Shown here piece after piece: positions 2,300-63,610 of a stretch of 64,000 nucleotides of DNA. Position numbers and translations under genes: made by a program. Origin of the DNA: Macrostomum lignano (taxonomy: Eukaryota); contig NIVC01000056.1 of NCBI GenBank assembly GCA_002269645.1, forward strand, positions 806,001 through 870,000, read 5' to 3'. Each line of letters begins with the position of its first letter. Within the stretch, counting starts at the first letter, position 1. The notes below the pieces were generated by a model. It did not search any database. It was not told the origin of the DNA and saw only the letters and a list, made by a program, of their open reading frames with translations.

Positions 2300-2499
2300 C
2301 TGCAATTTGTTATCAGTTTTATTGTCCCCTGTTTTAGCAGAAGCAATTACATTCAAACTGTTTGAGACTGTCTGTTCATCCCCGACTAGCCTCATGTGCT
2401 CAACCTAGCTTAAACGCTATTTGACCTTCTTAGCCTACTCAAGTAGCGACTGAACCTACTTAATCACTATCTAAACCTACGTGTACTCAACCGCTACTC

Positions 2500-3060
2500 A
2501 ACCGCTACTCAACCTACTCAATCGCTACATCAAACTACTCAATAGCTACATCAAACTACTCAATAGCTACATCAAACTACTCAATAGCTACATCAAACTA
2601 CTCAATAGCTAAATCAAACTACTCAATAGCTACATCAAACTACTCAATAGCTACATCAAACTACTCAATAGCTACATCAAACTACTCAATAGCTACATCA
2701 AACTACTCAATAGCTACATCAAACTACTCAATAGCTACTCAACCTACTCAAATCGCTACTAAACCTACTCAAATCGCTACTCAACCTACTCAATAGCTAC
2801 ATCAAACTACTCAATAGCTACATCAAACTACTCAATAGCTACATCAAACTACTCAATAGCTACATCAAACTACTCAATAGCTACATCAACATGCTCAATA
2901 GCTACATCAAACTATTCAATAGCTACATTAAACTACTCAATAGCTACTCAACCTACTCAAATCGCTACTAAACCTACTTAAATCGCTACTCAACCTACTC
3001 AATAGCTACTCAACCTACTTAAATCGCTACTCAACATACCTAAACCGCTACTGAACCGAC
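2500..3060. repeat. 21-bp minisatellite (CTACTCAATAGCTACATCAAA) in DHTKD1 intron 1
   Basis: Tandem copies visible between the two exons. Confidence 0.95.
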
Positions 3061-5848: not shown

Positions 5849-8689
5849 TCATCGAGCAGACACCCTGGCAACTACCACTCGCTTCCGCGTTCCGGAACTA
5901 GCAGCGCTAGGCACAGTGACGGCAGCAGACTTCCTAGCGTACACAGGATCAGTCGCTGCAGGTTCAACAGTTGAATTTGAAGACGACGCAGCGGAGGAAT
6001 CCAATCGAGCTTTTTTAGTAGCAGATCCGCCATTTTCTTTAGTTCGAATAGCTATCGCCGGTTGTTGCTGTTGCGAGGCGCTGCTGTTCAAAGCTACGAA
6101 TGCTCGAAAAACGTTTGGCGATATTTCGTCGTGCAATTTTCGATACAGCGGACCGGCCCCTCTGGTGTTTAACAATACAGGAGTGACTGTCGTTGTTGCA
6201 GTTGCTGCTGCCGCTGCTACTGCGATCGGTTGTTGAACGATAATCTTCTCTTTGGGTACCGTACTTTCTAGTGACTGTTCTTTTGGTTGTTCCTGATTTA
6301 GCACCTGTTGTGCAATAGGCTGCTGCTTTCGTCTATACGGATGGTAAAGCTTCGGATCAGCTGATAAAGGTTTATCTGTTGGCAGAAATCTTGCTCTTTG
6401 TTGACTGCCTATTTCCCCTCTTTTAGTAGACAGTAGATCGGCTTTTGACACTCGAACAACTTGAATGGGATTCGATTGATTATCTAATGAAGGCAGCTGC
6501 TGACGCGAACAAGAAGGATTTGAGTCCGATAGATCGGTGAAATTTTGCATCGACAAAGACGATTGTTGAGTTTCCGATAGAGGAGGAACGACGTTAAAAT
6601 TAATGTTGATTGCAGCGTCTGGGTCTACGAGCATATCGGATGCGGCCGATCCTGCGGTTGATGAAGCCTGAAGAGGCTGAGGCATCGGTGGAGACTGCTG
6701 TTGCTGAGCAGATGCAACAATTCTCATAGGTTTGTCGCATTTTCGTTTACGACGATTGTTGGATTCGATTGATCCACTAGGAGCAACAGATTCGTCTTGC
6801 GTCTCTGCGGCAGAGTCTTTCAATTTGGGCTGTGACCCACTGCTCTGCTGCGTCTCCTGCCCCTGTTGAGCCAAGAAGCCTGCCCAATCGATCTCGCGGG
6901 GCGCTACAGCTGCAGACGTTGTTTTACGTCGCGAATGCTTTGGCGGCAATTGTGGCTTAACAGAAATCGGATTCGAATCAACGACCACGGTTCGTACAGC
7001 AATCGAAGACTGCGGAGAAGGCAAAAGAGGAGTAGATATAGGTTCAGGCGTTGTTTCGCCTCCATTAACTTGCAAAGTCATGGAACTTGAAGATGGTCCA
7101 GATTGAACTGTAGATTGAACCGGAAGTTGCAGAGCTAATTTACTAAGATGAACTAAAGGATGCTGCTGCTGTTGTTGTGATTGCTGAGCTGGCTTTGGAT
7201 GATGCGCCGCTACAGGGTCTACAGGAGTCGACACCGTGCGAATGCCTACCTGACCAACAGCTGGTCCACCATCTTGCAGCTTCCTATAGTAGCGCGAATT
7301 TGGCGCGTCCCAACTGATTGGCGCCGGTGCTGGACTTTTGGGGTGCAACTTTTGGGCAGCAGATATTTGTTGTTGTTGCAATTTCTGCTTCTGCTGTTTC
7401 TTCTGCCGCTCCATAGCAGCTTCGGCGGTTAAGTCTACAATCGGAGTTTCGTGTACAACATTCACCACGTTTACAGCTGGGCGACCCCGACCCCTGTGAG
7501 TAGTCGGATGAGACTTGCTAGTAGTGGAAGGCTCAACTGCAGGTGCGGCAGATGGAAGTGGCAACTCTGGCAGCGTGAAAGACTCGGCTTCAAGCTCGGC
7601 AGCTACCGGTGGAGTTGGTGGCAACTCGTTATGGTAACTATCGCCAGCAGTACCGGCTAAGGTAGTGTCTTCGCTGCAAGCCTCGGCCGAGACTTCGATG
7701 CAAGCGTCCTCTTCAATGTGCTGCGATTCAGAATCGGACGATGAGGAGACGGCTTCGTTGCAGAAGCTCGAATCTGACTTGCGATTATTCTTATCTTGCT
7801 TGCTGCTGCTGCTAGTAGAGGTCTTATTAGTGATGTTGTCTTTCTTTTTTCTTTCACTAATAGTGACACTATGGACAACAGGAGACGCAGAAGCTCTTGT
7901 GCGACTGGATGAACTGCTTCTGTTATTAGGACTTGTTGAAGACTTATCAGACGACTGGTTTTGAGTCAGATTCTTTAGATCCCCCGCAGGATGTCGACGC
8001 TTTCCAAGACGTTTAAGGTCAGTAGCAGCAGGTGCAGATGGTGTCGCTGGGTTACAGCTTGCAGCTACAGATGTTGCAGTCGATGACCTTTGCTGCCTTG
8101 AGTTGCTTACTGACTTTTGCTGCTTCTGCTGATATGCCTGTTTTGTCTTCGGTTCCTGTTTATTCTGTTGTTCAAGCTTCCCTGGTTGCTTTTGCTTCTT
8201 CGGGTGTTCCTGTTTCTTCTTCAGCTCCTTTTCCTGTTTATCTTGATTCTTCAATTGTTGCGGCTTCTTTGGCTGCTCTGACTTCTGCTGTTCTTGCTTT
8301 TTCTGTTGTTGTAGCTTCTTCTGTTGTTGTAGCTTCTTCTGTTGTTGTAGCTTCTTCTGTTGTTGTAGCTTCTTCTGTTGTGCTAATTTCTGCTGCTCTT
8401 GTTCTTTTTGCTGCTCCAACTTCTGCTGCTCCTGCCTCTGCTGTTCTTCGTGCCAATGATTTCTCTGCTTTTTGTGCTTCTGCTCCTGCTTTTGCTGCCT
8501 GACTTTCTTTTTCGACACACTTAGTGGGCTAACCAAAACAACAGGACGGGAAATTCTACCGCCACTGCGAAGCTGCTTGTCACGATTCTGCTGAATTGCT
8601 TTGCTTTTTTGTCGCATGATTCTGCTTTTAAGAACTGTTGCCTTTTTAGCTGGATGACTGTCTTTTTGGCATGCAAAGAGTTTAAACAA
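5849..8689 (-). CDS. Long Q/S/K-rich, probably disordered protein; large terminal exon or single-exon gene of unknown family
   Basis: 946 uninterrupted codons ending in TGA. Basic NLS-like clusters (RRKRKCDKP, KRLGKRR) and a 7-aa QQKKLQQ repeat. No recognisable domain; the 5' boundary is uncertain. Confidence 0.7.
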   Translation of the reverse strand: MFKLFACQKDSHPAKKATVLKSRIMRQKSKAIQQNRDKQLRSGGRISRPVVLVSPLSVSKKKVRQQKQEQKHKKQRNHWHEEQQRQEQQKLEQQKEQEQQKLAQQKKLQQQKKLQQQKKLQQQKKLQQQKKQEQQKSEQPKKPQQLKNQDKQEKELKKKQEHPKKQKQPGKLEQQNKQEPKTKQAYQQKQQKSVSNSRQQRSSTATSVAASCNPATPSAPAATDLKRLGKRRHPAGDLKNLTQNQSSDKSSTSPNNRSSSSSRTRASASPVVHSVTISERKKKDNITNKTSTSSSSKQDKNNRKSDSSFCNEAVSSSSDSESQHIEEDACIEVSAEACSEDTTLAGTAGDSYHNELPPTPPVAAELEAESFTLPELPLPSAAPAVEPSTTSKSHPTTHRGRGRPAVNVVNVVHETPIVDLTAEAAMERQKKQQKQKLQQQQISAAQKLHPKSPAPAPISWDAPNSRYYRKLQDGGPAVGQVGIRTVSTPVDPVAAHHPKPAQQSQQQQQHPLVHLSKLALQLPVQSTVQSGPSSSSMTLQVNGGETTPEPISTPLLPSPQSSIAVRTVVVDSNPISVKPQLPPKHSRRKTTSAAVAPREIDWAGFLAQQGQETQQSSGSQPKLKDSAAETQDESVAPSGSIESNNRRKRKCDKPMRIVASAQQQQSPPMPQPLQASSTAGSAASDMLVDPDAAININFNVVPPLSETQQSSLSMQNFTDLSDSNPSCSRQQLPSLDNQSNPIQVVRVSKADLLSTKRGEIGSQQRARFLPTDKPLSADPKLYHPYRRKQQPIAQQVLNQEQPKEQSLESTVPKEKIIVQQPIAVAAAAATATTTVTPVLLNTRGAGPLYRKLHDEISPNVFRAFVALNSSASQQQQPAIAIRTKENGGSATKKARLDSSAASSSNSTVEPAATDPVYARKSAAVTVPSAASSGTRKRVVVARVSAR

Positions 8690-14199: not shown

Positions 14200-17100
14200 T
14201 CAGGGAGGTCTGCCGGTCCTGTCTGCAGCGTTGTCTTCGGTGGGGAAGATGGAGGCTCGTTTGGTAGCCCGGAGGAACCGGATGAGCCGTGGGATGTTCT
14301 CGGGCCGGCAAACGTCGTCCAGGGACGGGTTGGGCCCGAGGTGGTTGAACCGGTCTCGGTTGAAGGCCGGGCAGTAGCAGACGAAGTGCTTGGCATCTTC
14401 GTTCTCGAGGCTGCAGAAGGGGCAGAGTTCACTCCGGCAAACACTTCGGAGGAAACAGTGCCTGGCAAAGCAACCGTGACCTGTGAAGGTCATAGTGAGA
14501 GCGCGGATATCTTTTCGATTTTGATTCAAAAGGATTCTCCGCAGCTTGAGGGATGGATTGGGCACTGTAGCACGGGACTGGCGGCAGTTGGAAATGCCAC
14601 CCCATCTGCTTAAGTGCAGGATGTCCGCCCAGTCATTAATCTCACGATTAATGACCGTGGCGGGGATGGGGGCCAGGGGCACGGGGCCAAGGAGCGAGCC
14701 AGAACTACCCGCCTTGGCGAGAGAGTCGGCGGGCTCGTTACCTTTGAACCCAGCGTGTCCTGGGATCCACGTGAGCCGGACGGTGTTCCTCCGAGCCAGC
14801 TTGTTGAGCTGCCCGATACAGTTGCGGACTGTTTGGGAGTTCGTAGTGGTGTGACACAGGGCCTGCAAAGCGGCTTGGCTGTCAGAGTGGAAGAAGAATC
14901 TTCTGTCCTTGAAGTCCCTGCAGTGGAGCTCAGCTGCACAGGAGCTGATGGCAAGGATTTCGTTCTGGAAGACGCTAGAGAGTCTGCCAGTGTGTTGGGC
15001 GTGAGTAGCGATCACGCCGCCGTTGATAAGGATACAGACTCCAAAGCCGGATAAACCGTCTTTGGAGGATCCGTCAGTGAAGCAGTGAACCTCCTGAGGG
15101 GCCCAGCTGTCGTTGGCGTTCTCCCTGGAGGGGATAGTGACCTTGAAGCGTTGGTAGAGACTGAGGGAGCGCGGCTCAGCGTCCGAAAGGACAGCCGTAC
15201 TCCCGCTCTCCTCCAGAACTTTAAGGCACAGGCCAGAGTGCGGCAATAGCTTGCGCTTCGCCATCGCTCTTTGTGGCTTGAAGCTAACGCCAGCCTCGAT
15301 TAGCCGGCGGGTGGTTTTAGCAGCCTCGCGACGGACAAAGATGTCCAGAGGCGGGAAACAGAGAAAAGCGTTGAGGCCGTCAAAGGGAGCAGAGAGCGGG
15401 GCATTCAGAATCATGCGGCACGCGCGTCCCTGCACCTTTTTAAGGGCTTCGTAGCAGGTTTTAATCTGCAAGGCGCTGGTACAGATCATGCAGACCGGCG
15501 TAGGTATCGGCCGGTCGGACCATTGCGATGTAGATCCACCTGAGCCGTTTCGGGGTGAGGCCCCAGGTGGTGCCAACGGCTCTGTGCAGCTGCGCAAGAA
15601 TCGCGAGGGCTTTTTTGGTTTTGGCCTGAACGTGGGTGGACCACCTCAGCCGGTGGTCCAGCGTAACGCCGAGACACTTGGTTTGCTTGCAGGATGGGAT
15701 TTCCACCCCGTAAAGCTTTAGTGGGCGAATACGCCAGTTGACCCTGCTGGTGAACATGATCGCGACAGTTTTGGTCTCGGAGAGTCTGAGGCCGCACCTG
15801 TCCGCCCATCGTTCAGCAGAGCGAATAAAGTTTTGCAGAAGATCCCTAAGGGTTTCAGGTGACGGTCCGGATGCTACGGCTGTAACATCATCGGCGTAAC
15901 CGACCTTAAGGATGGGGTCAAGATGGCTGTCCTGAAGAAGCTCATCGATGACCATGTTCCAGAGAACTGGAGAAAGGACACCGCCCTGGGGGCTGCCTTT
16001 GCAGACGGTTACCGTCCGTTGGTGGCCCAGCAGGTGTGCGGTGGCAGTGCGGTGGCTGATCATATACATGATCCACCGGGTGAGGTGCGAGTGGGTTCAT
16101 CTAGCACGTAGAGCTCTGTCAAAAGCCTCAAAGAGGACATTATCAAAGGCTCCAACAATGTCGAGGAAGACAGCGAGAGCGTAGCCATTACCAAGAACGG
16201 CTTTCTCCAGCATGTCGACCAAGACATGAAGCGCGCTCTCCGTGGACCGGCCTGCCCGAAAGGCGTGCTGTTTCTCACTGAGCGGCTTGTTCTTCAGTTC
16301 CACAAAGAGGAGGCGCCAGAGCACCAGTCTCTAACAGCTTCACCAGTGAGGAGGTGAGGCTGATTGGTCTGAAGGATTTAATGGACCGATAGTCCGGTCG
16401 GCCGGGCTTGGGGATAAAAACCACCTTGGCCTCGGTCCAGGATTTCGGAACAAAGCCGAGTACAATGCAAGCTTTCAAGAGCTGGCAAAGGTACCGCAGA
16501 AAACCGGTGAATTTCACCGCCTCTCGCAGGAAAGCTGGCACAACGCCGTCCGGTCCTGGGGATTTGAATGGTATGAAGGAGGAGACTGCTTTAGTAACGC
16601 GGTCCTCCGTAATGATTGAGTCAGCCAGTCAGCCAGTACGTGTCCACCCACTGAATGATCAGGGGGGTTAGGCCTGGCTGGCTCGCACGGGAAAAACGCT
16701 GTTAGCATCGCCTCCAGCGTTTCTCCTGGGTTCTCAGTGAGCGAGCCGTCGGCTCTCTTTACTGAGGAGAGTTTGGACATTTTGTCCAGAGTGAGGGCTT
16801 TAACGATTCTGGAGGTGGGGCGGGAGCCCTCAAGTTCCTCACAGTATTCGCGCCACTTATTGGTTTTGGCATTCCTAACCTGCCTCTTGAACTCGTGGAT
16901 AGAGTTCAGGTAGGCGGTTTGGTCGGCCGGATTTTTAGTTTTTTGGGCCCTACGGTGAAGCCTTTTGGCTCTGCGACGGAGGTCGCCAAGCTGTGGGTTC
17001 CACCATGGGGCCGACTGTTTGCCTTTATATGCCTTTAGTGGGCATGAGGCTTCGAAGGCAGCAGTGAGCGAGTCCGTAAGTACGGCCGCAAATTCATCTG

Positions 17101-17814
17101 CTTCCTCGCAAGTGTTGATGGAGACTGGAGTGCTAGTGCATCGATAGGTCTCCTCCAAGGCAAGCCTGAAGGCGGTCCAATCGATATTCCTAGCATTCCG
17201 TTTCCAGTAAAGCTGGCCTGCGTTTTGGGCGCTGGCCAGCGTGAAAGAGATGAACTTGTGATCGGAGAGGGACGCCTCAGGAAGCACCCGCCACTCCCTA
17301 GTGCTCTGGAAGAGCCTGGGCGTGGCGAGGGTGGCATCCAGCACCTCCGATCGGCGTCCGTTATTGAAATTAGGGGTATTACCCGAGTTACAGAACTCAA
17401 TAGTTGTAGTAGTGATATAAGCCAGGAAGTCTTCACCTCTCTGGTTAATATCAGAACTGCCCCAGTGGATGTGGTGGGCGTTGATATCGCCTGCCACAAG
17501 CAGCTCATAATTCCTGGTGGAGCAGAGCTCGACCAGTGTGACAAGCTCTCCTGGGATCATCTCGCCGTTGCCCGGTAGGTAGACCGAGGCGATGAGGGTA
17601 GTCCTCCCAGGGAGTATGTCTTCAGACTGGATGACACAGATGTCCCTGGTAGACATGTGGGGACATGGTGGAGGCTGCCCCTTAGCGTCCAAGGTTCCTG
17701 GATAAGGATAATCCCTGGTGCGTATTGGTCAGTGTGTTTCAATAGGTTGACTGAAGCAGCAATGCTGTGCTGCAGGTTGACCTGCAAGCAGTGGATGCCC
17801 TGGGAGACAGTCAT
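14200..17814 (-). pseudogene. LINE ORF2 (APE, RT, RNase H, CCHC) with several frameshifts
   Basis: APE: QVNLQH, IQEPW, SVYLP, GDINAHH. RT: FIPKPG..YRSIKSFRPISLTS, QHAFRAGRST, LDIVGAFDN, PQGGVLSPVLWN, GYADD. RNase H: FTDGS, NEILAI, SDSQAAL, WIPGHAG..GNE.AD. C-terminal CPFC...HFVCYC. Confidence 0.9.
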
Positions 17815-21692: not shown

Positions 21693-22261
21693 ATGAAAAC
21701 ACAATTGGATTTCAGAAAATGCAGGACACCGAACATTATTTTGGCAGTGCTGCTCCTGCAAGTTGACTCATCCCAGCAGCAGGCCGTGTGCCCTGCTCCG
21801 TTCAACATCGAGGCTGGCAAGTGCGTCTTCGTGAACACTTCGATCGTATTCAACTGGTGCGAGGCCAACCGGCAGTGCGCAGCGATCGGAGGTGAGCTCA
21901 TCAACTCGAACGAGACGCTGAAACTGCTCAGCAGCATGCCGAGCATGAATGTCTTTACGCATTTGTGGCTCGGAGTGACCGACCTCGCGGACGAGCGACT
22001 GACATCTCGGTCGGGCTGGCAGACGGTCAACGGCAATGAAAATCTACCGCTAGACAACGCACTGTGGTACGGATGGATGCCAAACAACAACGGGAATCAG
22101 GACTGTGTGATGCTGGCAAATGACAACAGCCACACCTTTGTTGATCAATCCTGCATTCTTAAAAAAAGGGGATTCGCTTGCGAATTCACCCCAAAAATGG
22201 GGCCTTCATGCGCTACCTGGGTACAGGTGCCGTTCAAGCGCACTGAGTACAATGACGAGTA
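21693..22261 (+). CDS. Secreted C-type lectin domain protein, 5' part (interrupted by EnSpm)
   Basis: Hydrophobic leader IILAVLLLQV, then a CTLD: C..F....GKC, WCEANRQCAAIGGEL, WLGVTD, W....PNN.GNQDCV, VDQSC....FACE. Confidence 0.85.
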
Positions 22262-22777
22262 CACTGTAAATCTTATGGGTCCGGATAAGGTCCGAATTGC
22301 ATAATGCGGACCTTCATGCCTGAAGGCGGACCTTCATGTCTGAAGGTCCGATTTTTTTGGTCAGAGAAAACGAATGAAATTTTTTCAAGTGCCCTCAAAT
22401 GATATTTTTTTAAGCACACGCGAGATTTTATAGAGAAAATCGGACTGGAAATAAATTTAGGTTTTATACCACCGTATTTTTTGCCGCATAAAAACACAAA
22501 TAAAATTATCCGTCAAATGTAATTGCACAATCGAAAGCTCTAAATGCCTTAAATTAAAGGAATTATATATTGTATTCCTTTTAACAGGTACAAGCGCATT
22601 TCTAACACAGATCAAAAATATGTTGGGAACTTTTGTTTCACTCTACTAACTTCGAACATTTAGATTGTTGCGTGCAATTCGTTCTGATCAAACCTAAAAA
22701 TTAGTGCTTTTTAAACGTTTTTACGCGTTGTCCATTCCACAACGACGAATTTAGTAGGCTTATCCACTGTCCAGGAT

Positions 22778-25331
22778 ATGTTAAATGGAGATGAAAATGT
22801 AATTTCAAAACTATTTCAATGTAGTATATGTCTTCATACACACAAGGATTTATTTAAGCTTATAAGTCATATAAAACTATACCATTCTTTTGGGAATAGC
22901 AATTTTTTATGTCCAGTTAGGGGATGTTACCATATTAGTGTTACAATTGAAGGATTACAAGCACATGCCTATCGTATGCACAAAAACAGTGTTGTTGATA
23001 ATTTTTCCCAAGACCAAGTTCTACAGCCAAATTGTGTTCATAATAACCCTACTCTAGACTTATTAGGAAACCCTTTAGAAAATGAATTGCAAGCTGTGCC
23101 TATAGATATAGCCATATTATCTACTATTTGTAACCAAGTTGAAAATGAAAAAAAGACCCTGAATTTGAAATGTCTAGTGATTTTTTATGTGAAAATACAA
23201 GAAAACATCTTGCTGAAAATTTTGTTTACTTTTATCTAAAGTCTAGACATTTCTTTTTAATTCCTAAAAGCAAATCTAATCAATTATGTGAACTTGTTAA
23301 GGAAATAGTATTGAAGTTTGCTGATGACTATTTTTTGTTATTTGAGCAATTTTTAAAAGAAGAATGTCCTTCAATAGTTAACAGCTATAATTCTTATAAA
23401 AATAAATTAAATTTGCAAGAAATGATTGACCTTTCATTAGAGCATCTATTAAGTAATAAAAAAATATTTGAAATTTTACAAAACAAGTTTAATTTTGTTG
23501 AGCCCATTGAAATCATAGATGAAGAATCAAAATTAAAAATTCTATATATTCCAATAAAAGAAACACTTAGTTCTATTATAAAAAATGAGACATTGCTTAA
23601 GTATATTATTACAAATTCTTATTTAAATGCAACCAACAAAGAAAATTTTTTTTCAAGTCTACTTATTTTGAAGAACATATTAGTCCATTGTTAACAAATA
23701 AGAATGGTATATTCATAAAACTTTATTCAGATGAAATTGAAATATGTAATCCTATTGGGTCTGCCAAAACAAAACATAAATTATGTGTAGTATACTTTAC
23801 TATTCTTAATTTCCCTGAATATCTTAGTTCATCTTCAGACTTATATTTTCTTTTAACAGTATTTAATGATTCAAATGTTAAAAAGAAAGGTTTACAGTTT
23901 TGTTTATTTCCATTAATTAGAGAGCTGAATGAGCTTTACTTTGAAGAATTTCAAATAAGTAATTTGATAAAAATGCCTGTTATTGCTGCTTTCATGACTG
24001 GGGATAATTTATCAATACATAGAATGTTAGGTATGCAAACTTGGTTTTCAAGTGGTTATATTTGTAGATTTTGTTTTATAGGTTATAAACAGCTTTGTAG
24101 CATTAGATTAGAAGAATTAAGTACATTATTCCTATTTGAATATCGAGATAATTCATCATATATTGAAGATTTTAAATCCTTAAGTAATGGTTTAATTTCA
24201 CCATCTGTGTTTAGAAGTGTAGCATATATTAACTTTCAATATTTTTTCCCCCCTGATATAATGCATGATGTGTTTGAAGGGTTTTCTCATGTTGTTATAT
24301 GTATTATTCTATTAAGTATTATTCAAAATCATAATATTAGTATAGACTATATAAACAAACAACTAAATTTGATTAAAGAAGTCAGTATTCCTACAATAAA
24401 TAAATATCACTTACAAAATTATCATCTACCATGTACTTCTAATCAAATAATTGTTATTCTACAATACTTTGGACTTTTATTTGGACATTTGTTTGAGTTG
24501 GATGATGATATTTGGATATTATTTAATTGTCACAGGCAGTTTCTTGACATAATTTTGTCCCCATATGATAGTAGCATAAACTTAGAATATTTTCAATCTC
24601 TTATTTCTGGCCAATTAGAATTAATATATAGAAACACGGGCTTCAATCCTAAATATAAATGTAAATTGCATTATATATGTCACTATCCTGAATTTTATCA
24701 TTATTATAGTGGTCTTAAATACTTATGGTGTATGCGAGGTGAAGCTCATCATCAATTGCTTAAGAATATAAACAGGCATGCAAGAAATTTCAAAAATCCT
24801 GCCTATACATGTGCAAAACAATATCAAATTCAAAAGGCACTTATCATTAAGCACTATGAACCAGGTACAATTAAGAGCCATAATATAAATCCTATTAGCT
24901 TAAATATGCTATTGACAATAGATGAACAAACTGAGTTATGCAACAACATGAATTTAGATACAGACTCAATTATTGGCACTATTTGTCTTTCTACTAATGA
25001 ACTAAAATATCAGGGGTTTGTATATCGGACTCCAACATTAAATTACCGTTATTGTTTGCCAATTTTAGAACCAACTGGAATTGCTTTAGCATTAATTAGC
25101 CATATTATTCAACTTTCCAACAAGTGGATAATTATTTGTAAAAAAGTGAATGCTAAATTTTCTTGTCATTATAGCAGTTTTATATGCACTGTGAATAATG
25201 ACCATTTAGTATTTATTGAACCTACTCAGCACTTTTTTCATCAGCCAATTCCATTTTTAATGTATCAAGGGAAACTTTTTCTTTCTTTAAAATATTATCC
25301 AATGCTACATTGCCAAAACATTGATCAATAA
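22778..25331 (+). CDS. EnSpm transposase with two N-terminal C2H2 fingers (about 851 aa after two 1-nt corrections)
   Basis: CSIC..HIKLYH and CPVRGC..HAYRMH. Then LYSDEIEICNPIG..KHK..YF.ILN.P, GDNL, CRFC, PPDIMHDVFEG, KLHYICHYP and LWCMRGEAHHQ, which match animal EnSpm transposase motifs. Confidence 0.88.
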
Positions 25332-25636
25332 TCTACAATCTTAGTGGGTATCATTTTAGATAAATTTAAGCATATAACAATATGGCATACACTTGCACTT
25401 CATAAAATAACAAATTATTACAAGGGCCACCTTGCCTCTAGCACAAGGAACTGTGCTCTCCACCTTACATAGATTTCTGGCCTATAGGTGTCTAACCTTT
25501 TTATGATAGGTCGGCTTGCCCTTCCTTGACTAGGCTAGTTCTATGTAGATGGTGCATGTTTTCGAACCATTTCTTGCCTAAAATGGGTTCATCCTCTGTC
25601 TAAGCTTGTTGAAGCTTCAGCTTTTAGTATTGAAGA

Positions 25637-26178
25637 GTGAAGATTGTTCAGAAAAAAGCAACAAAAAAACAAAAACATCATAAAAACACTAAACATTTTG
25701 TTGTCACAGTCATTACTTATGGCTGCAAGGTATGGGGTCCACTGGCCAGGCAATCAAAAATTAAGGATCTGGATAATATTCAATTGAAATTCTATAAGTC
25801 TCTCCTTAAATTCTTAATCTACCAGAGCATACATACAAGCAATAAAGTCATACTCAATGAACTCAACATTCTTCCTATTTCTGAAATCATTAAGAAAAGG
25901 TACCTCCTTTTCTGGTTAAAACTTATTTAAAGCTAACTCTACTACCACTAGTCTCTTTAACAACAATGACAATCCAATTGATCCTTGGAAGAAAGCCATC
26001 TCACAGCAACTTAAAGGCATTGATCTAATGCAAAAACTTCTACTGTTTAAATTGTATTGTCCATTATTGACAACTTTTGTTAACACTAAGTTATTCATAT
26101 CTAATTAAATACACTCTATTAACATAACGGGCACTACTTGCCCAAGCCAATTAACTACTACTACTACTACTACTACTA
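25637..26178 (+). mobile_element. 3' fragment of an L2/CR1-group-like LINE with a (TAC)n tail, inside the EnSpm
   Basis: ITYGCKVWG...LDNIQLKFYKSLL...ILNELNILPI...RYLLFWLKL is a typical LINE ORF2 C-terminus. It is followed by (TAC)n at about 26153-26178. Confidence 0.6.
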
Positions 26179-26310
26179 CATTAAGTCAAGCCAAGGACAA
26201 AAGCCGAAAAATCATAATGAACAAGAATTCCTTGGCTTTATAAATTCATTTTATCTGTGTCTTACCAGATGTATTCTGATTGAGGTTGTGCACATCATAC
26301 CTCATTTCAG

Positions 26311-28029
26311 CTTCGAATCTGCAACGGCTCAGAGGAGCGCAAGAAGCTCCTTCCAGCTTCTGGCCTGACCTTGGCGGACCTTCGCATCAAAGGTTGTTTA
26401 AAATTGGACATTGCAGATGTTGAAAATGTTCGCATTGTCACTTCTGACGGTTTCGAAATCGACGACGATGATTTAATATCGGAGGTGGCAAAGGAATGTA
26501 GAACTGTGTACTTCCTTCTTTCTGGAGAGTTGCTTCCAAGCTGCGGTGCATGCCCTGTAGAACCTTCAACTACACCAAAGCAGCAAAGCGAAATACGCAA
26601 TGTCGAGATTGCCACAACACCGAGTCGAGGCACACAGGCTCTGAGTCCAAATCCAGCTGTAGCAGCTACGGCTGCAACTACACTTCCATGGCCCGAAGTG
26701 TACTCGCTTCCACGAATGGACGATCTCGCCAACGCCCTTCGTGATCTACGAATGCACCCCGAAAAGGGTTCCGATTTAAAAATGAACGCGACGTTTGTCA
26801 ACAAGTTCCTTAAATTCATCGTCGATCACATCTGTTTGAACTATCTGTCGCCAAATGAACCATACCTGTCATCTAGCCAGATAACAGATGTGTGCACTTC
26901 CATAGTAACTTCGTATCCTGGACTGAAGGACACCTCATTAAGTGGGAGCTCAAGCTTTTGGCGCCAAAAGCTTATTCGGCGTTTCAAAGAGCTCCGGTTC
27001 GTTGGCGACTTTGTCGACAAGAGCAGCCCAACGGTTCAGGAGATGCGACGGAAGCATGGTCGACTTGGTCATCGGCGTATAATTCTACCAAATGCTGCTG
27101 CAGCTGCTGCAGGCCCAAGTGCGGTTACTGTGAGCCAAAGGCATAAACGGCAGTACAAGGAAGTTGAAGGCCAGGAAGATGATGACGACAATGAAATTAT
27201 AGCTTCACGTGCTAAAAGAGCCAACAAGCAGCGTATCAACGACGACGAAGATCTGATCGAAGAAGAAGGCGATGATGATAGTGATGCAGACGATGCTGGC
27301 AGTGCAATGGCGAAGAGCGTTGACTTCGGCGAGTTCGATACCGATGTACCACCGTCACACGAAGCTCGTCGAACGAGATTGAACGAGACTCATCATGACT
27401 CTTCAATATCAGACGTTCTCAACGAAATGCAGGCTCTGTTTCCGATTCGAATATTGCGGTGCCAAGATTTGACGGTTAGTGACGAAATTGCCTTATATGC
27501 GCCACTGGTAAACATCGCAGTACTGCAGCAGGAGGCGTATCTCATGATCCAGACATACAACAGAAGCAAAACTGACTATGTACTTCCACCAAGTCCATCG
27601 GAAATGAGAATCAGGATTATTAACGCCTTGTTGCTTGTGTACAGTAAAAGGCAGTTGCTAAAAAATTTCAAGCTGTGCAAGGATTATGTGGAATTGCCAG
27701 TTGTTTCAGAGGAGGACAAGCTGCCTGTGGCTGTCTTTCTTCTTCTCGGTCGGTTGCGAGTCGACCCGTCTATTATTCTTCGCGACGCACTGCCAGTCAG
27801 AATTCTGACAGAGGATGGAAAATGGTGCGGCGTTTTCGTCAACGGTGCGAGCATCCCATTCGACAGTGTTACTGACTCGATAATTGCATTTGTAATTGTC
27901 TTCATCGCGTTCAACCTCCAGCACCTCCCTGCCCTAGAGGCGTTTCTGGAGGTAATCGAAGTGCTGTCGGGCCTTCGCAAGAAAGCCGTCCGCAAGGCTG
28001 CAGTAGCTATTTTGGATGCACTTCGTTAG
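26311..28029 (+). CDS. EnSpm accessory ORF: CIDE-N-like N-terminus, acidic middle region, conserved C-terminus
   Basis: 572 open codons from the putative acceptor ATTTCAG|26311. The C-terminal IIAFVIVFIAFNLQH...FLEVIE resembles the accessory ORFs of animal EnSpm elements (often auto-annotated SAMD3-like). Confidence 0.75.
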   Translation, partial: LRICNGSEERKKLLPASGLTLADLRIKGCLKLDIADVENVRIVTSDGFEIDDDDLISEVAKECRTVYFLLSGELLPSCGACPVEPSTTPKQQSEIRNVEIATTPSRGTQALSPNPAVAATAATTLPWPEVYSLPRMDDLANALRDLRMHPEKGSDLKMNATFVNKFLKFIVDHICLNYLSPNEPYLSSSQITDVCTSIVTSYPGLKDTSLSGSSSFWRQKLIRRFKELRFVGDFVDKSSPTVQEMRRKHGRLGHRRIILPNAAAAAAGPSAVTVSQRHKRQYKEVEGQEDDDDNEIIASRAKRANKQRINDDEDLIEEEGDDDSDADDAGSAMAKSVDFGEFDTDVPPSHEARRTRLNETHHDSSISDVLNEMQALFPIRILRCQDLTVSDEIALYAPLVNIAVLQQEAYLMIQTYNRSKTDYVLPPSPSEMRIRIINALLLVYSKRQLLKNFKLCKDYVELPVVSEEDKLPVAVFLLLGRLRVDPSIILRDALPVRILTEDGKWCGVFVNGASIPFDSVTDSIIAFVIVFIAFNLQHLPALEAFLEVIEVLSGLRKKAVRKAAVAILDALR

Positions 28030-28659
28030 ATGATTTTATAACGCCTAGACATGACTATTGTAATCATTTTCATTTTTATAATAATTATATTCATTTTCAT
28101 GTTAGTACGATTGAATATGACTGTGAATTAATCGTAATCACAAGCCTAATCACAATCACAATATTTATTTTCATATTCACAATCATAATCATAGAGTGTT
28201 ATCTGTCATCAGAGGGTCACGGCGATGTTGGCTGCTTATTTATTGCCCTGTGTATTTAGTTTGTGCTTTTTAGTCTGTATATTCAACTTCACTCTTTGAG
28301 TGACCAAAGCAAACACTTATTCGCAATGTGTAATGTGCAACAAATAATTACTAAATATTATTATTACCACTGTTTTTGTACTACAACAATAAATATTTTA
28401 GGATCAATCTTTATATACCATAAAAAATACTTTAAATTGGTTAACATCCTTCATAAACATGCAATTGTTGATTACGAATGCTTCACTTCTTACTTTTCTT
28501 AAATTGAGCAATGACTGACAACATTGTATGCCTCACATAATGTAATTGGGAACAATTTTACAGGTAAGGAAATTCATAAAATTCATACCTATAATAGTGG
28601 GTATTTTGTGTCTTGCAGATCAAGTGAATACATTTTGGGGTGTAATCGTTTTTATATTT

Positions 28660-28870
28660 CGGACCCATAATGCGGACATCTGAAAAATATGGACTTTGCA
28701 ATAGGGACCTTTCAAAATACGGACCTTTCAAAATACGGACCTTGCAATACGGACTTTACAATACGGACCCATCAAAATACGGACCTTTCATGGTCCGTTA
28801 TTTCGACGCTCCGGACCCTCCACAATGGACCTTTCCCGGACCCTTCTTCGGACCTTTAGGAATTACAGTG
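28660..28870. repeat. Subterminal repeat array (AATACGGACC-like) at the EnSpm right end
   Basis: More than 10 CGGACC/GGACC motifs, mirrored by GGTCCG/CGGACC at 22275-22350. Confidence 0.85.
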
Positions 28871-29059
28871 TACTGCTACACTGAGATGCAGCAAGTTACC
28901 GATGTGCTTCACTGCTTCGCCTCAAGCAAGTACTCGAATGCCAGGAGCGTGTTGTACAATAAAAATCTTCGCAAGTGCCGGTTGCTGCAGTTTATTGACG
29001 CCCAAGTCGAACAGGAAATCGAGAACAGCAGCGACTGGATAAAGTTCGTTCTTCAGTAA
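28871..29059 (+). CDS. C-type lectin gene, 3' part (PAN/apple-like domain)
   Basis: YCYTEMQQVTDVLHCFASSKYSNARSVLYNKNLRKCRLLQ...* is in frame with 21693 once the element and one TA are removed. Confidence 0.8.
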   Translation, partial: YCYTEMQQVTDVLHCFASSKYSNARSVLYNKNLRKCRLLQFIDAQVEQEIENSSDWIKFVLQ

Positions 29060-32329: not shown

Positions 32330-33870
32330 TCGACACTGAAATCGTCAGACTCAAGCAGCAAGCCCTGTCCTGAGGATTTCCAAACCTGCACCTGGAGGAG
32401 GACATCTCCTCCAGCCCAGTCACCACGGAGGAAGTTATGCTGTTCGCTCGAAAACACCAGGCGGCAAGGCGCTCGGCTCCGACGAAGTCCCAGTCGAGGC
32501 GCTGCGGCTTTGCTGTGTGGCCTCCCAGGTCACAGGCGTCATGAACCACCGAGTGGACCGTAGCGCACATCATGCCGATCCCGAAGAAGGCAGGGACAAC
32601 GCGGTAAGATGACCACCGCAGGATCTCGCTGATGTCCTGCACTGCAAAGCTCTTCAACCGGCTGCTGCTCAATCGCCTGCAGTCGGTGCTGGACCCGTAC
32701 CTGCAGAAAAGCAGAACGGATTATGGCCGCAACGCGGTACAGTGACACAGATCCTCGCACTCCGCCGTGTTATCGAGGAGGCGTGCATCCGATGTGTTAT
32801 CGAGGAGGCGCGCATCCGCCAGTCTACGCTGATCATTGTCTTCGTTGACAATTTCGAAAGGCGTTTGACTCGGTGCTGAGAGCCGCGCTTCCCTTCGTCC
32901 TTCGAGCCGATCCGGTCCCGAAGCAGCTAAACGACGCTGTCATGTCTTTGTATTGCGACACTCGAGCTGCTGTGGTGACGGCGACCTGTTCGTCACATCA
33001 TCAGAAGTTCTGCAGGGCGACACGCTTGCGCCGTTCCTCTACGTGCTGCTGCTGGACTGGGTGCTTCGGATCGCACTCCCGCAGACGCATCGGTCGCCGC
33101 CACATCGAAAAGCGCTTGAGCGTGCTTGGCTACACCGACGACCTCGCCCTCACGTTGAAGGCACCCAGCGCCAGATCTACAGGCTGGTCGAGGTGGCATC
33201 GCTGAAGACCGAGGTGCTGACTGTGCCAGCCGACATCCCAGCGGACCTGACGTGCCGCGTCGCTGACGGGCAGATGACCAAGCTCGCACACTGCCAGCGG
33301 TTCACCTACCTCGGTGGTCTGATGCCCCACGTGGAGGAAGACCTCTGGCGGCGCAAAGTATTTGCCTGGGCGCCTTCCGTTTGATCCGAGCCGTCCTCCA
33401 GTCCGAAGCGCTGCCCGACACAGAGGGCTCGGCTGTGGCAGGCGGTGATCGAAACCGTCCTGCTATGCAATGCTAAGACATGGACACTGACGGCTACGCT
33501 GGAGCGGCAGCTGGTCTCGGCGCACTCAGGGCTGCTCCGTGCGGCCTTTCGAGCTGACGAGAGCGTCGGGACCGAGGCCCTGTACTATCGGGCCAAGCTG
33601 CAGCGCTCGCCCATCATCCTGCGCCGGCGGCAACTTCAACTGAAGGGCCGAGATCTGGGCCGAGGGCTACTGCCCCCAACCTCTTCAGGACGTCTTGCTG
33701 CTCACTTGCAGGGCCCGTTCAGGCGGGGTCAGGCCCGAACCCGTCGATACGTGGACTCTGGGGCGCCCGGCACTGCTAACGGGGCGGACTTCGCCCGCTC
33801 TCAGGCTCTGCGGCGCGCCATCTGACGCACCCTGCTCTCTGTGACTTTTCAAGCGGGGCTGCGTACTTTG
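32330..33870 (+). mobile_element. RTE-clade LINE, decayed 3' part
   Basis: MPIPKKAG, ISLMSCTAKLFNRLLLNRLQ, QILALRRVIEE, VLQGDTLAPFL, YTDDL, VIETVLL.NAKTWTLT, and a short GTT tail. Confidence 0.85.
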
Positions 33871-41301: not shown

Positions 41302-42123
41302 ATGTCCTTCAGCGAGAAGATTGTTGTTGAGCTCTGCTACAACTTGCTGCACCAAGGCTACCGCATCTTTGTCGATAAATGGTTCGGTTTCTATCGGCTG
41401 TCAGAGTACCTGCTGACACAAGGAACGCACCTGACTTGTACCGTCCGGGCCGACCGAGGTGTGCCGATTGAGCTCAGACAGCTGCACGTTCCACCTAACG
41501 ACGTCGCCTTCATGCGCAAAGACGGGGTGCTGGCTGTCAAGATCGTTGAACGAAAGGAGAGTGGCCTGAAGACTCTGTATTTGCTGGACACGAAAGAGGC
41601 GGCTGAATGGGTTCAAACCAGACGCGTGGTTTGTGGAGGAGCAGAAACAGTTGTGCAGAAGAGCAGGTCAGTTCTCACCTACAATCGGTGCATGGGTGGT
41701 GTTGACAGAATGGACAGTCATCTACAGCCTCATCTGCCAGGGAGGAAAACTACAAAGTGGTTTTTGAAGCTCGGCTTGCATCTATTTCTTCAAATGATTC
41801 GCAACGCTTGGATTGTGTACAGCCGGTGCGGTGGAGAGAAGACGTTCGCCAAGTTTCTTGAGGCCAGCATTCGGGAGCTGGTGGAGCGTACCGGAACGAG
41901 CAGGAAGCGCCCGGCCGCTGCCATCCAGGCCGCTCCAGGTGGCCCAGTCAGTCCGCACTTTCCAACGAAGATCGTGGCGCGGGACAGTCAGCCAAGACCA
42001 ACAAAGCGCTGTCGTGTCTGCTACAGAGCTGGAAGCAGCAAGCCCACGATATACTGCTGCCCTGAGTGTCCAGGGGAACCGGGGCTCTGCTTGGAAGCCT
42101 GCTTTCAGCAGTTGCAAGCCTGA
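41302..42123 (+). pseudogene. piggyBac transposase, C-terminal half
   Basis: YRIFVDKWF, YNRCMGGVDRMD, KWFLKLGLHL and the Cys-rich tail CRVC...CCPEC....LC...CF. The N-terminal half is missing or decayed. Confidence 0.85.
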
Positions 42124-59363: not shown

Positions 59364-59921
59364 CACTAGATGGGCCACTCAGGCATATATACTTAGAATA
59401 AATGTTAGTCAAAGTGTAACTGAGATCCCAAATCCCCTCCAATGTGTGATTGAGATCCCAAATCCCCTCCAATGTGTGATTGAGGTCCCTAATCCCCATC
59501 AAGGTGTGACTGAGATCCCAAATCCCCTTCAAGGTGTAACTGAGATCCCAAATCCCCTCTAATGTGTGATTGAGATCCCAAATCCCCTTCAAGGTGTGAC
59601 TGAGATCCCAAATCCCCTCCAATGTGTGACTGAGATCCCAAATCCCTCCAAGGTGTGACTGAGATCCCAAATCCCCTTCAAGGTGTAACTGAGATCCTAA
59701 ATCCCCTCCAATGTGTGATTGTGATCCCAAATCCCCTTCAAGGTGTGACTGAGATCCCAAATCCCCTCCAAGGTGTGACTAAGATCCCAAATCCCCTCCA
59801 AGGTGTGACTAAGATCCCAAATCCCCATCAAGGTGTAACTGAGATCCCAAATCCTCTTGAATGTGTGACTGAGATCCCAAATCCCCTCCACTAGATGGGC
59901 CACTCAGGCATATATACTTAG
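59364..59921. repeat. 30-bp minisatellite (TGAGATCCCAAATCCCCTCCAAGGTGTGAC) bracketed by 33-bp direct repeats, Shal intron 3
   Basis: CACTAGATGGGCCACTCAGGCATATATACTTAG occurs at 59364-59396 and 59889-59921. Confidence 0.9.
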
Positions 59922-60999
59922 TAAAACAGCTTTTTACTTTCAGTTCAGTAGCAAAGAAGAACACATAAGCTATTTTATTGAACACATAAGCTTGATCGGC
60001 GAAACTAGAGAAATCAGCATCAGGGTGTCCATAGTCACCTGGTGTAATTTGTTGAAGGTGCCGACGGCGTCAGGATGATGACGGAATGCTTGAGAGACTA
60101 GCTAAGAATGTCTGACGGTTGATTCTTGCCCACTGTCGAGGCTTGATCGGCGAAACTAGAGAAATCCGCATCAGGGTGTCCATAGTCACCTGGTGCCACA
60201 GCTGTTGAGGGTCCAGAAGCTCCACCTGGGTAAAGGCTAGTGACCAACGAAGTCAGAACTGATGCAGACACATGTGGTCGACGTGCTGATGAAATTTGGA
60301 GACTTGGCAAGGCTGCACTGAGGCGCAGTGCTGATTGGCGCACAGGGGTGTACTGAATACACTAGCGCTTATGGGAAAAATCCGACCTTCTGGCAGAATC
60401 GTCGAATATCTCGACGGTCCGGAGGGCTGGCGACTTGATTCTTGTTTGAGAAGGTGCGCAACAATAAGTTAGCCCGTGTTCTTGAATTTCGTGTGCCTGC
60501 GTTGCTCCGTTCCGGCGTAGCAAAAAAAATTGTCAGGGGGGGGGAATTCCCCCCCCCCTTGGTAGTTCTACTGATAATGTACATTAGCCAGTCCACTGAA
60601 ATGTACATTGCAGCTTTGGGCTGAAATTCCGTGAAAGGCAAAAAATGGGTGGCGGGGCGGGGGTAAAGCTTCTGTGTGGAGTTGGAGGGGCTTAGGCTAG
60701 GGGAATAAGAGCCAATAATGAGCCTGGTCTTTAGAATACATTAAAATGCTTCAGTTCAACTTACTACTGAACTGAAAGTAGATTACACGCAAATATCTGT
60801 GCTCCTAATTCCAGTGGATGCAGCTCTTCTAGTTCACTCTGCTTCCAGTTGATAGAGTTCTTTCTATTGTAGTTCACTTCACACCTAGTGGGTAAAGTTT
60901 GTTCGAGGTGACTCCCAACCCAGTAGCCTAAGTTTAATCCTTATTTTTACTAGAGGTTACTCATGTCTATTGGTTAAATTTCATTTTTAGTGACTCCAC

Positions 61000-61280
61000 G
61001 CCCTAGTCCCTAAAGTACATTCTAGGTCATTCCAAACCCAGTCTTCAAAGTACATTCTAGGTCACTCCACACCTAGTATTCAAAGTACATTCTAGGTCAC
61101 TCCACACCTAGTATTCAAAGTACATTCTAGGTCACTCCACACCTAGTCTTCAAAGTACATTCTAGGTCACTCCAACCTAGTCTTCAAAGTACATTCTAGG
61201 TCACTCCAAACCTAGTCTTCAAAGTACATTCTAGGTCACTCCACACCTAGTCTTCAAAGTTCGTTCTAGGTCACTTCGCA
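61000..61280. repeat. About 35-bp minisatellite (CTAGTCTTCAAAGTACATTCTAGGTCACTCCACAC), Shal intron 3
   Basis: Tandem copies are visible. Confidence 0.9.
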
Positions 61281-61425
61281 TCTAGTAGCTAATCCTTATC
61301 TATTCACCTAGTATTTCAAGTTCATATATATATTGGTTTTGATTTGCTGCCACAAAAAAATAAGGAGTGTAGTATTAAAAGCATTATAAATCATATTTAA
61401 GCTTGAAATTATATCCTACATTCAG

Positions 61426-62049: not shown

Positions 62050-62950
62050 AGGCTCTGTAGTGACTTCTTGTGGTAATCTGAAGGATTGGAGGGTGTCACT
62101 CTGGAGTAATAAAGAGTGTCACTCGAGTATTCAGGGTTATCACTCTAGAATATTGGAGGGTGTCACTCTGAAGTGTTGGAAGGTGTCACTCTGGATTATT
62201 GGAATGTGTAACTCTAGAGTATTTGGAGGGTTTCACTCTAGAGTATTGAAGTTGTAGGATGTCCCTTTGGAATATTAAAGGTGTCACTCTGGAGTATTGG
62301 AAGGTGTCACTGGAGTATTAAGGGGTGTCACTCTGGAGTATTGGAAGGTTTCGCTGGAGTATTGAAGAGTGGCACTCTGGAGTATTGGAAGGTGTCACTG
62401 GAGTATTGACGGGTGTCACTCTGAGTATTGGAAGGTTTCGCTGGAGTATTGAAGAGTGGCACTCTGGAGTATTGGAAGGTGTCACTGGAGTATTGAGAGG
62501 TGTCACTCTGGAGTATTGGAAGGTTTCGCTGGAGTATTCAAGAGTGGCACTCTGGAGTATTGGAAGGTGTCACTGGAGTATTGAGGGGTGTCACTCTGGA
62601 GTATTGGAAGGTTTCGCTGGAGTATTGAAGAGTGGCACTCTGGAGTATTGGAAGGTGTCACTGGAGTATTGAAGAGTGGCACTCTGGAGTATTGAAGGGT
62701 GGCACTCTGGAGTACTCAAAGGGTGGCTCTCTGGAGTACTCAAGGGTGTCACTAGAGTATTGAGGGTGGCACTCCGGGGTATTAAAAGGTTGTCACTCTG
62801 GAGTATTGGAAGGTTGTTACTCTGGAGTATTGGAAGGTGTCACTGGAGCATTGGAGGGTGTCACTTTGGAGTATTGGAGGGTGTCACTCTGGAGTATTGG
62901 AGGGTGTCACTGGAGTACATGTATTGAAGGGTATCAGTCTAAAGTACTCA
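62050..62950. repeat. Degenerate 21-23 bp minisatellite (TCACTCTGGAGTATTGGAAGGTG), Shal intron 4
   Basis: Tandem variants are visible. Confidence 0.9.
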
Positions 62951-63349: not shown

Positions 63350-63610
63350 TATGTAACCCCTAAATCCCAAATCCCTTTCAAAGTGTAACTGAGATCCCAA
63401 ATCCCCTCCAATGTGTGATTGAGGTCCCTAATCCCCATCAAGGTGTGACTGAGATCCCAAATCCCCTCCAAGGTGTAACTGAGATCCCAAATCCCCATCA
63501 AGGTGTAACTGAGATCCCAAATCCCCATCAAGGTGTAACTGAGATCCCAAATCCTCTTAATGTGTGACTGAGATCCCAAATCCCCTCCAAGGTGTAACTG
63601 AAATCCCAAA
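63350..63610. repeat. The same 30-bp minisatellite as 59410-59890, in Shal intron 5
   Basis: Same unit and orientation. Confidence 0.9.

Follow-up and report, generated by a model that had tools for sequence, protein, structure and literature searches.

A CIDE-N domain in the second gene of a CMC-type DNA transposon from Macrostomum lignano

Introduction

The question raised by this locus is why a gene carried by a DNA transposon should begin with a domain otherwise known from host cell-death proteins, and what the domain might do there. The gene is an open reading frame, ORF2 (26311-28029, 572 codons plus stop), in a stretch of 64,000 nucleotides from Macrostomum lignano (GenBank assembly GCA_002269645.1, contig NIVC01000056.1, positions 806,001 to 870,000). 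This whole stretch is called the window, and coordinates are those of the window, with genes and protein domains on the forward strand. An initial annotation, made from the letters of the sequence, proposed that ORF2 is the accessory protein of a transposon and that it opens with a CIDE-N domain of the CAD/DFF40 type. CIDE-N has so far been treated as a module of host proteins in cell death and at lipid droplets, and the second gene of a transposon would be a third and quite different context. Our reading, which we consider somewhat better than an even bet (a probability of roughly 0.55), is that ORF2 is the CIDE-N-bearing second gene of a CMC-type transposon, that its start codon would be donated by a spliced leader and that a CIDE-N polymer would bundle the ends of the element.

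The N-terminal domain of ORF2

The open frame spans 26284-28026 and has no in-frame ATG near its start. Translation of 26311-26540 in frame 1 gives LRICNGSEERKKLLPASGLTLADLRIKGCLKLDIADVENVRIVTSDGFEIDDDDLISEVAKECRTVYFLLSGELLP, identical to the peptide on which the initial annotation had based its proposal. PF02017 (CIDE-N) is the sole match of this peptide in Pfam-A, even at E-values up to 10, with residues 2-62 aligned to profile positions 5-63 of 76 at 28.0 bits (E 2.4e-6), where the curated gathering cut-off is 23.5 bits. Five relatives also score against PF02017, namely the ORF2 of a related element, L002, described below (48.2 bits, E 1.1e-12, profile positions 4-74 of 76), P0004 (42.7), P0002 (35.7), P0007 (32.8) and P0005 (31.9 bits).

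A single-sequence phmmer search of the PDB with the 76-residue peptide returned no CIDE-N chain and a spurious match to RNase E (E 0.2) as its only result, and profiles were therefore needed. A first N-terminal profile (A3) was set aside as partly circular because generic CIDE-N fragments had been included, and it was replaced by a profile built from six N-termini of the ORF2 family only (A8). Searched against the PDB, A8 matched DREP2 (E 2e-7), ICAD (3e-7), CIDE-A (4e-7), DFF45 (3e-6) and DREP3 (2e-4), followed by weaker matches to DREP4, FSP27, CIDE-B and CAD. In total it retrieved 11 distinct CIDE-N chain sequences, with no non-CIDE-N chain at E <0.1.

The AlphaFold model of the region, based on 71 sequences and with a mean predicted local distance difference test score (pLDDT) of 77.8, has the order b-b-a-b-a-b, with strands at residues 2-5 and 11-13, a helix at 21-31, a strand at 40-44, a helix at 52-60 and a strand at 65-70. 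In Foldseek the best superpositions were on CIDE-N structures, with template modelling (TM) scores of 0.69/0.72 for DREP3 (2.1 A), 0.71/0.70 for FSP27 and 0.71/0.71 for DREP2, and root-mean-square deviations in the range 2.1-2.2 A; ubiquitin and SUMO chains lay below these at TM 0.55-0.66.

The structural comparison also holds a point on the other side. Foldseek E-values were weak for all targets of the 81-residue model, and the lowest of them (5.6e-3) belonged to the N-terminal ubiquitin-like domain of SMCHD1, followed by many of the ubiquitin and SUMO chains, so that the fold alone cannot tell CIDE-N from other beta-grasp domains, whereas the sequence profiles do. Together with the empty single-sequence search this could mean that the N-terminus is a generic ubiquitin-like or PB1 beta-grasp domain, to which the CIDE-N label became attached by chance or over-reading. 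We regard this as very improbable, since six independent family members reach the PF02017 gathering score with no other family listed, the family-only profile finds CIDE-N chains and nothing else at E <0.1, and the hallmark charged residues fall in register. A generic PB1 or ubiquitin fold was what the initial annotation had named as fatal to its proposal, and neither family appeared in the Pfam or PDB profile searches. Pfam, the family-only PDB profile, AlphaFold and Foldseek together point to a genuine CIDE-N domain at 26311-26535 (residues 1-75, isoelectric point (pI) 4.6), as had been proposed.

The CAD/DFF40 label of that proposal was too narrow. CAD is among the weakest of the CIDE-N matches of A8 (E 0.07-0.8), the best being DREP2, ICAD and CIDE-A, and the domain is thus no nearer to CAD/DFF40 than to other CIDE-N domains; neither Pfam nor Foldseek found a CAD nuclease domain downstream in ORF2. 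Like DFF40/CAD, DFF45/ICAD, Drosophila DREP1-4 and CIDE-A/B/C (FSP27), ORF2 has an N-terminal stretch of about 75 residues with the CIDE-N profile, a predicted alpha/beta-roll and basic (R2, K11, K12) and acidic (D46, D51-D54) interface residues. Unlike in those proteins, the rest of ORF2 is unrelated, with no CAD nuclease, DFF-C or CIDE-C domain, and the gene is multi-copy and lies between transposon inverted repeats. By its domain ORF2 truly belongs to the CIDE-N domain family, but it is neither a member of the DFF40, DFF45 or CIDE protein families nor a homologue of TnpA.

The transposon around ORF2

ORF2 sits within a complete two-gene cut-and-paste DNA transposon of 6.6 kb at 22262-28870. 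An inverted repeat search pairs 22258-22290 with 28842-28874, and end-to-end comparison gives the left terminal inverted repeat at 22262-22290 (forward strand, CACTGTAAATC...) and the right one at 28842-28870 (reverse strand, ...GAATTACAGTG), the first 8 of 8 bases matching and about 22 of 29 overall. A target site duplication (TSD) TA stands at both ends (22260-22261 and 28871-28872). The left end has a cluster of five copies of CGGACC/GGTCCG in about 90 bp (22278-22350), and the right end has one of nine CGGACC copies in about 200 bp (28660-28854). The two clusters hold 14 of the 28 matches in the window, and shuffled versions of the 64-kb window average 12 matches, none of 100 reaching 28.

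When 22262-28872, which is the element plus one TA, is deleted, the two parts of an interrupted forward-strand host frame, 21693-22261 and 28873-29056, are rejoined into a single ORF of 251 codons. The insertion into this reading frame is clean and probably recent. The restored host ORF has no hit in Pfam, which likewise gave no support to a guess, from its cysteine pattern, that it encodes a C-type lectin.

Members of the CMC group (CACTA/EnSpm, Mirage and Chapaev, also 'CMCT') have 5'-CA..TG-3' termini and a TSD of 2-5 bp, and their transposases have C(2)C and H(3-4)H motifs that lie after the second D and before the E of the catalytic triad (PMC12730594). The termini of the window element, CACTGTAA...TTACAGTG, are of the CACTG...CAGTG type and its TSD is TA, in agreement with this definition. 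The first gene, ORF1 (22778-25331), was located by tblastn with the intact 832-residue ORF1 of L002 and encodes two N-terminal C2H2 zinc fingers, for which the family consensus passes Pfam zf-C2H2, followed by a CMC-type DDE transposase. Its motifs in the window are D at 23730, D at 24003, CxxC at 24063-24074, HxxxH at 24669-24683 and E at 24741. In L002 numbering these are D305, D396, C416xxC419, H620xxxH624 and E644, and they are kept in 32-35 of 35 homologues. The order D, D, C(2)C, H(3)H, E is the CMC signature, in which the predicted catalytic roles are assigned by pattern. E487, in the invariant motif DIMHD..EG, was considered as the catalytic E and rejected, as the placement of C(2)C and H(3-4)H fits E644 instead.

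Matches of ORF1 to curated profiles all stay below threshold: Transposase_21 in 7 of 35 members (E 0.012-0.1), DUF4218 in 7 of 35 (best 0.0018) and Plavaka in 1 of 35 (0.0016), with no better scores from the family consensus. Transposase_21 and DUF4218 are the two halves of the plant CACTA transposase, and their sub-threshold hits on ORF1 are collinear. A word-indexed search found 52 relatives of ORF1. Most are unnamed proteins about 800 residues in length, and they come from aphids, ants, a firefly and assemblies in read archives. Termini, TSD, subterminal repeats and predicted catalytic motifs all place the element in the CMC group, with the curated-profile matches of ORF1 remaining sub-threshold.

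Two 1-nt frameshifts break ORF1 of the window copy into three frames. They lie in homopolymers, one in an A7 run near 23145 (within 23140-23160) and one in a T8 run near 23645 (within 23640-23655). Both sites are open in P0178, a copy elsewhere in the M. lignano genome with 99-100% identity. The frameshifts may be real slippage mutations or errors of long-read assembly.

That ORF2 would be a transposon accessory protein is borne out by its position downstream of an ORF1 with the CMC signature, inside a CACTG-ended element with a 2-bp TSD and subterminal repeats. The description of it as a TnpA-like partner holds for position and presumed role, but not for sequence, as no similarity of ORF2 to plant TnpA, or to any Pfam family besides CIDE-N, could be detected. 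The element resembles En/Spm, the maize CACTA element, and the CMC group in its CAC(T)G...C(A)GTG termini, short TSD and subterminal repeat arrays at both ends, and resembles En/Spm in supplying two proteins, a transposase and a second factor. It differs from canonical CACTA elements, with their 3-bp TSD, in having a TSD of 2 bp. Whereas TnpA of En/Spm corresponds to Pfam Transposase_24, the sole Pfam match of ORF2 is CIDE-N, which would also be its oligomerisation module, and En/Spm uses alternative cis-splicing where ORF2 is probably expressed by spliced-leader trans-splicing. A catalytic DDE protein with a separately encoded partner is known too from PIF/Harbinger elements, cut-and-paste transposons in which ORF2 is a DNA-binding Myb/SANT protein; these belong to another superfamily and have other partner domains, and no Myb/SANT domain is present here.

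Conservation of the two-gene layout

The layout is kept in two further elements with complete ends. L001, also from M. lignano (NIVC01000126), has an ORF1 of 760 residues, an ORF2 with 47% identity to the window ORF2 protein, CACTGTG...CGCAGTG ends, TSD CA and TGGACC arrays. L002, a 6,068-bp element on a JGI metagenome contig, has the intact ORF1, an ORF2 with 38% identity on the same measure, CACTGTAATTCC termini, TSD TA and CGGACC arrays; its left terminus is common to it and the window element. All three share CACTG-type termini, a 2-bp TSD, subterminal repeats, the gene order and a full-length open ORF2, with proteins that are 38-51% identical.

The order ORF1 to ORF2 recurs in three further sample sets. 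In the read-archive assembly ERR11523656 (L006) an ORF1 of about 800 residues is followed by an ORF2 that starts MPQTFIKIMNF... and has a CIDE-N match of 32.8 bits. In the assemblies ERR148583xx (L008-L010) a member of the ORF1 family is accompanied by a CIDE-N exon with its own ATG and a GT donor, and the next exon opens with KPWETSRIIPIEEF, which is the start of the central module of ORF2. In SRR26493805 (L007) the ORF1 is truncated by the contig end, and the ORF2 is more distant, with a weakly CIDE-like N-terminus. An ORF1 followed by a CIDE-N ORF2 is thus present in a second M. lignano subfamily, L002, L006 and L008-L010, and this transposon lineage has ORF2 as its conserved second gene.

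L006 also has a dense cluster of nested palindromic repeats (7867-8246 of that locus, unit approximately ACTTTGTATGCCATACAAAGT), which lies downstream of its last ORF2-like segment at a distance of about 1.5 kb and may be the subterminal repeat array of that element.

Architecture and copies of ORF2

Behind the CIDE-N domain, residues 76-124 form a linker rich in P, S, T and A. It leads to a central, all-helical basic domain (26683-27060, residues 125-250, pI 9.2, AlphaFold pLDDT about 87) that opens with a conserved WPxVYSLPxM motif and ends in the basic run RRKHGRLGHRR. An acidic, disordered linker with KR-rich patches follows (27061-27315, residues about 250-335); its length differs between homologues, and its pLDDT is below 50 over residues 133-214 of the modelled fragment. 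The C-terminal alpha/beta domain (27316-28026, residues 336-572, pLDDT >90) is the most conserved part of ORF2. A Foldseek search of residues 118-572 against the PDB and BFVD gave no match at E <1, and no Pfam family besides CIDE-N was found in ORF2 at E up to 10.

The open frame is 100% identical to the GenBank protein PAA77931.1 (BOX15_Mlig000438g17, M. lignano, 'partial') over the matched 98%, while the printed sequences differ at two residues. The window subfamily comprises at least 13 protein variants of >90% identity on about 15 M. lignano contigs, and there are at least three further ORF2 subfamilies in this species (P0002, P0004 and P0005). In UniProt the name 'CIDE-N domain-containing protein' is already given to two fused gene models of M. 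lignano, A0A1I8HFV0 and A0A1I8IIT0, and the multi-copy proteins annotated under this name in M. lignano are products of transposon genes rather than of apoptosis genes. No ORF1 accompanies the close free-standing CIDE-N hits at three loci (L011-L013), which resemble ordinary host CIDE-N genes.

An exhaustive profile search with ORF2 through 1.84 billion representatives returned 45 matches in all; about seven cover nearly the full length, and no known host gene family is among those. To judge from this search, the full architecture is rare and transposon-borne. A more distant relative, P0011, has a weakly CIDE-like N-terminus. Two other hits from outside the window, the short proteins P0040 and P0045, match the WPxxYxLP...YPxLxD..G..W module weakly (E about 1e-3) and carry it behind other N-termini, that of P0045 being different and beta-grasp-looking, which hints that the helical module is older and pairs with interchangeable N-terminal domains. 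A possible resemblance of this central module to a large SAMD3-like metazoan family is a lead only.

The base composition of the two genes differs as well. In the window element, L001 and L002 the G+C content is 27-34% in ORF1 and the non-coding parts and 47-51% in ORF2 (48.5% in the window), a split that is kept although the proteins share 38-51% identity. No such split is seen in L006 (31 versus 33%) or L007 (36 versus 37%). Distinct codon or expression regimes, or a separate origin of ORF2, are possible sources of the difference.

The start codon of ORF2

ORF2 has no ATG of its own. The spacer between the two genes (25332-26310, forward strand), presumably an outron, ends in an acceptor, TTTCAG (26305-26310), and the junction TTTCAG/CTT (26305-26313) stands at the first codon of ORF2. 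In three diverged Macrostomum-type copies the acceptor occupies the same position, as TTTCAG, CTTCAG and TTCCAG, each followed by [C/T]TTCGAATCTGCA, and upstream of it sequence conservation collapses. It fits the trans-splice acceptor motif of M. lignano, [T/C]TNCAG, and the spliced leader of the worm, 35 nt long, has ...TTGCATG at its 3' end (PMC8629364). Leaders in flatworms are known to provide the initiator AUG from their 3' end (Cheng et al. 2006, as cited in PMC9851317). Joining ...TTGCATG to CTTCGAATC at 26311 yields ATG CTT CGA ATC..., in the frame of ORF2.

Given the missing ATG, the conserved acceptor and a leader that ends in ATG, we consider it probable that ORF2 receives its start codon from the spliced leader, a view resting on sequence and annotation boundaries. 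Trans-splicing at TTTCAG/CTT would free ORF2 from the element transcript, and the 3'-terminal AUG of the leader would become its initiator, giving M-LRICNG.... Several paralogues have GenBank models that begin precisely at the acceptor base and carry a 5'-partial flag, which is how leader-trimmed transcripts look; the first residue of PAA77931.1 is the same leucine as that of ORF2 at 26311. The initial annotation had made its proposal depend on 26311-26370 being transcribed in frame, and the annotated exon does begin in frame at 26311.

An upstream exon with an ATG, joined by cis-splicing, is the alternative, and a candidate is at hand, as the first seven codons of ORF1 are followed by GTAAT and would also join in frame. 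If the leader is indeed the donor, ORF2 is like other flatworm mRNAs with a leader-donated AUG in opening at a trans-splice-type acceptor without its own ATG, and unlike them in that the putative recipient is a transposon gene downstream of a transposase, an operon-like use. It would mean that the element has adapted to the mRNA processing of its host.

Within the spacer, 25634-25927 had been guessed to be a fragment of the reverse transcriptase of a long interspersed element, to which Pfam gave no support.

Possible function of ORF2

The initial annotation had suggested that the domain might oligomerise the transpososome, might bind and titrate DFF/CIDE proteins of the host, or might share an origin with the beta-grasp domain of EnSpm accessory ORFs. 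CIDE domains polymerise head-to-tail via a basic and an acidic face, which has been proposed as their unified mechanism of assembly (PMC8647176). In DREP2 the interface brings K13, R22 and K23 against D56, E61 and E64, and the single substitution K13D reduces the filament to a monomer (PMC6292858). In the A8 profile alignment the counterparts in ORF2 are R2, K11 and K12 for the basic set and D46, D51 and D54 for the acidic one, all of them retained, and K11, K12, D46, D51 and D52 are invariant in the three full-length family proteins that were aligned. The domain is thus predicted to keep both oppositely charged faces, and for this reason self-assembly is the mechanism that we favour. ORF1 was checked for a CIDE-N domain and has none, which excludes a heterodimer of ORF2 with the transposase in the style of CAD and ICAD.

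We suggest that CIDE-N would polymerise ORF2 head-to-tail, that ORF2 would be tethered to the CGGACC subterminal arrays, either directly via its basic helical domain or indirectly via ORF1, and that the polymer would bundle both ends of the element in a higher-order complex, to be cut by ORF1. As the transposase has no CIDE-N partner domain and repeat arrays lie at both ends, self-assembly with tethering is the simplest model. In En/Spm it is TnpA that bundles the element ends, and CIDE-N would be the oligomerisation module that does this job here. The proposal is tentative, and we would put its chances somewhat below even. If it is true, a CMC element outside plants may pair its ends by a salt-sensitive head-to-tail polymer instead of TnpA.

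Several observations weigh against our reading or narrow it. The window copy may be non-autonomous since its ORF1 is frameshifted, unless the frameshifts are assembly errors. An in-frame ATG lies upstream in L002, and L006 and L008 each have an ATG of their own, so that a leader-donated start would at most be an adaptation in Macrostomum. That ORF2 might bind DNA is guessed from the pI of 9.2, and the zinc fingers of ORF1 could equally be what reads the repeats. Among more distant relatives of ORF1, L003-L005 have no ORF2 or CIDE-N nearby, L004 alone of the three extending about 2.9 kb past ORF1.

The charged faces that speak for self-assembly could also be aimed at the host, and ORF2 would then dock on host CIDE-N proteins of the DFF40/CAD, DFF45/ICAD or DREP type, which could blunt apoptotic DNA fragmentation after transposon breaks or borrow a host nuclease or chaperone. 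Heterotypic CIDE-N pairs do use the same basic and acidic faces (PMC6292858; PMC5730196), the acidic motif DGFEIDDDD of ORF2 resembles DGTIVDDDD of ICAD, and a transposon that makes double-strand breaks would plausibly gain from damping a death pathway. However, retention of both faces also fits homotypic filaments, and A8 has no preference for one host subfamily, DREP2, ICAD and CIDE-A scoring about equally; docking on host proteins is in our view unlikely. Just as unlikely, we think, is that ORF2 is a regulator or inhibitor that coats the subterminal repeats or sequesters the transposase and so limits transposition. Models for such a role exist, as TnpA has a repressor side and ICAD holds CAD inactive. 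An inhibitor would have the same anatomy as a bundling factor, and it would suit a trans-acting dampener that many copies (13 variants) retain an intact ORF2, whereas lesions are found in copies of ORF1, and that the host-like G+C content of ORF2, 47-51% against 27-33% in ORF1, suggests a different expression regime. Pairing of the CAD/ICAD type would nevertheless need a CIDE-N domain that ORF1 does not have, and a required factor would account no less well for a two-gene order that very divergent elements keep.

Base composition enters once more in the idea that ORF2 is a passenger, a captured fragment of a host gene with no role in the life cycle of the element. CACTA and Pack-type elements do capture host gene fragments, CIDE-N is otherwise a domain of host genes, and ORF2 stands at 48.5% G+C in an element that is elsewhere 27-34%. 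The conserved two-gene layout weakens this idea, the order being kept at 38-51% protein identity between the window element, L001 and L002 and recurring in the three further sample sets; besides, both ORFs are alike in G+C in L006 and L007, and the roughly seven near-full-length relatives include no known host gene family. We consider a passenger quite improbable, and return to self-assembly of ORF2 at the element ends as the function that we favour.

It is tempting to extend the favoured mechanism to a CMC-type lineage across several invertebrate groups that would build its transposition complex on a CIDE-N filament, with the transposon and DFF/CIDE modules linked by capture in either direction and with the Macrostomum element depending on the leader for the start of ORF2. 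Such an extension is possible and, taken as a whole, doubtful. The finding raises the question whether the CIDE-N domains of animals were spread or supplied by mobile elements. In Hydra genomes CIDE-N counts are raised beside transposase domains, an increase that is unexplained (PMC7642931) and could fit. The initial annotation knew of no description of a CIDE-N domain in such an arrangement, and in the full-text literature on CIDE-N together with transposases or transposons we likewise found none.

Neighbouring sequence

The rest of the window is rich in repeats. Between 43707 and 47125 lies a 3.4-kb satellite of about 200 copies of the unit ATATCTCCGACACTTC (16 bp, with a higher-order period of 101 bp), which accounts for the GC skew of -0.68 in this interval. 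Two satellites stand near the 5' end, at 11-1600 and 2494-3034, one A-rich with periods of 30/177 bp (AT skew 0.82) and one of 26 copies of the 21-bp unit CTACTCAATAGCTACATCAAA. Tandem arrays are also found near the 3' end (59410-59890, 60993-61286, 62077-62911 and 63364-63611), where a 30-bp unit occurs in two separate blocks beside 23/44-bp and 35/139-bp arrays.

Other mobile elements are represented as well. A non-long-terminal-repeat retrotransposon on the reverse strand (14200-17692, G+C 55-64%) has Exo_endo_phos_2, RVT_1 and RNase H domains in several overlapping ORFs, and a pair of reverse transcriptase-like ORFs similar to it lies on the forward strand at 32953-33825. A piggyBac-type transposase is represented by a C-terminal fragment at 41302-42123, also on the forward strand, with a match to Pfam DDE_Tnp_1_7 (E 6.6e-17) and its zinc finger.

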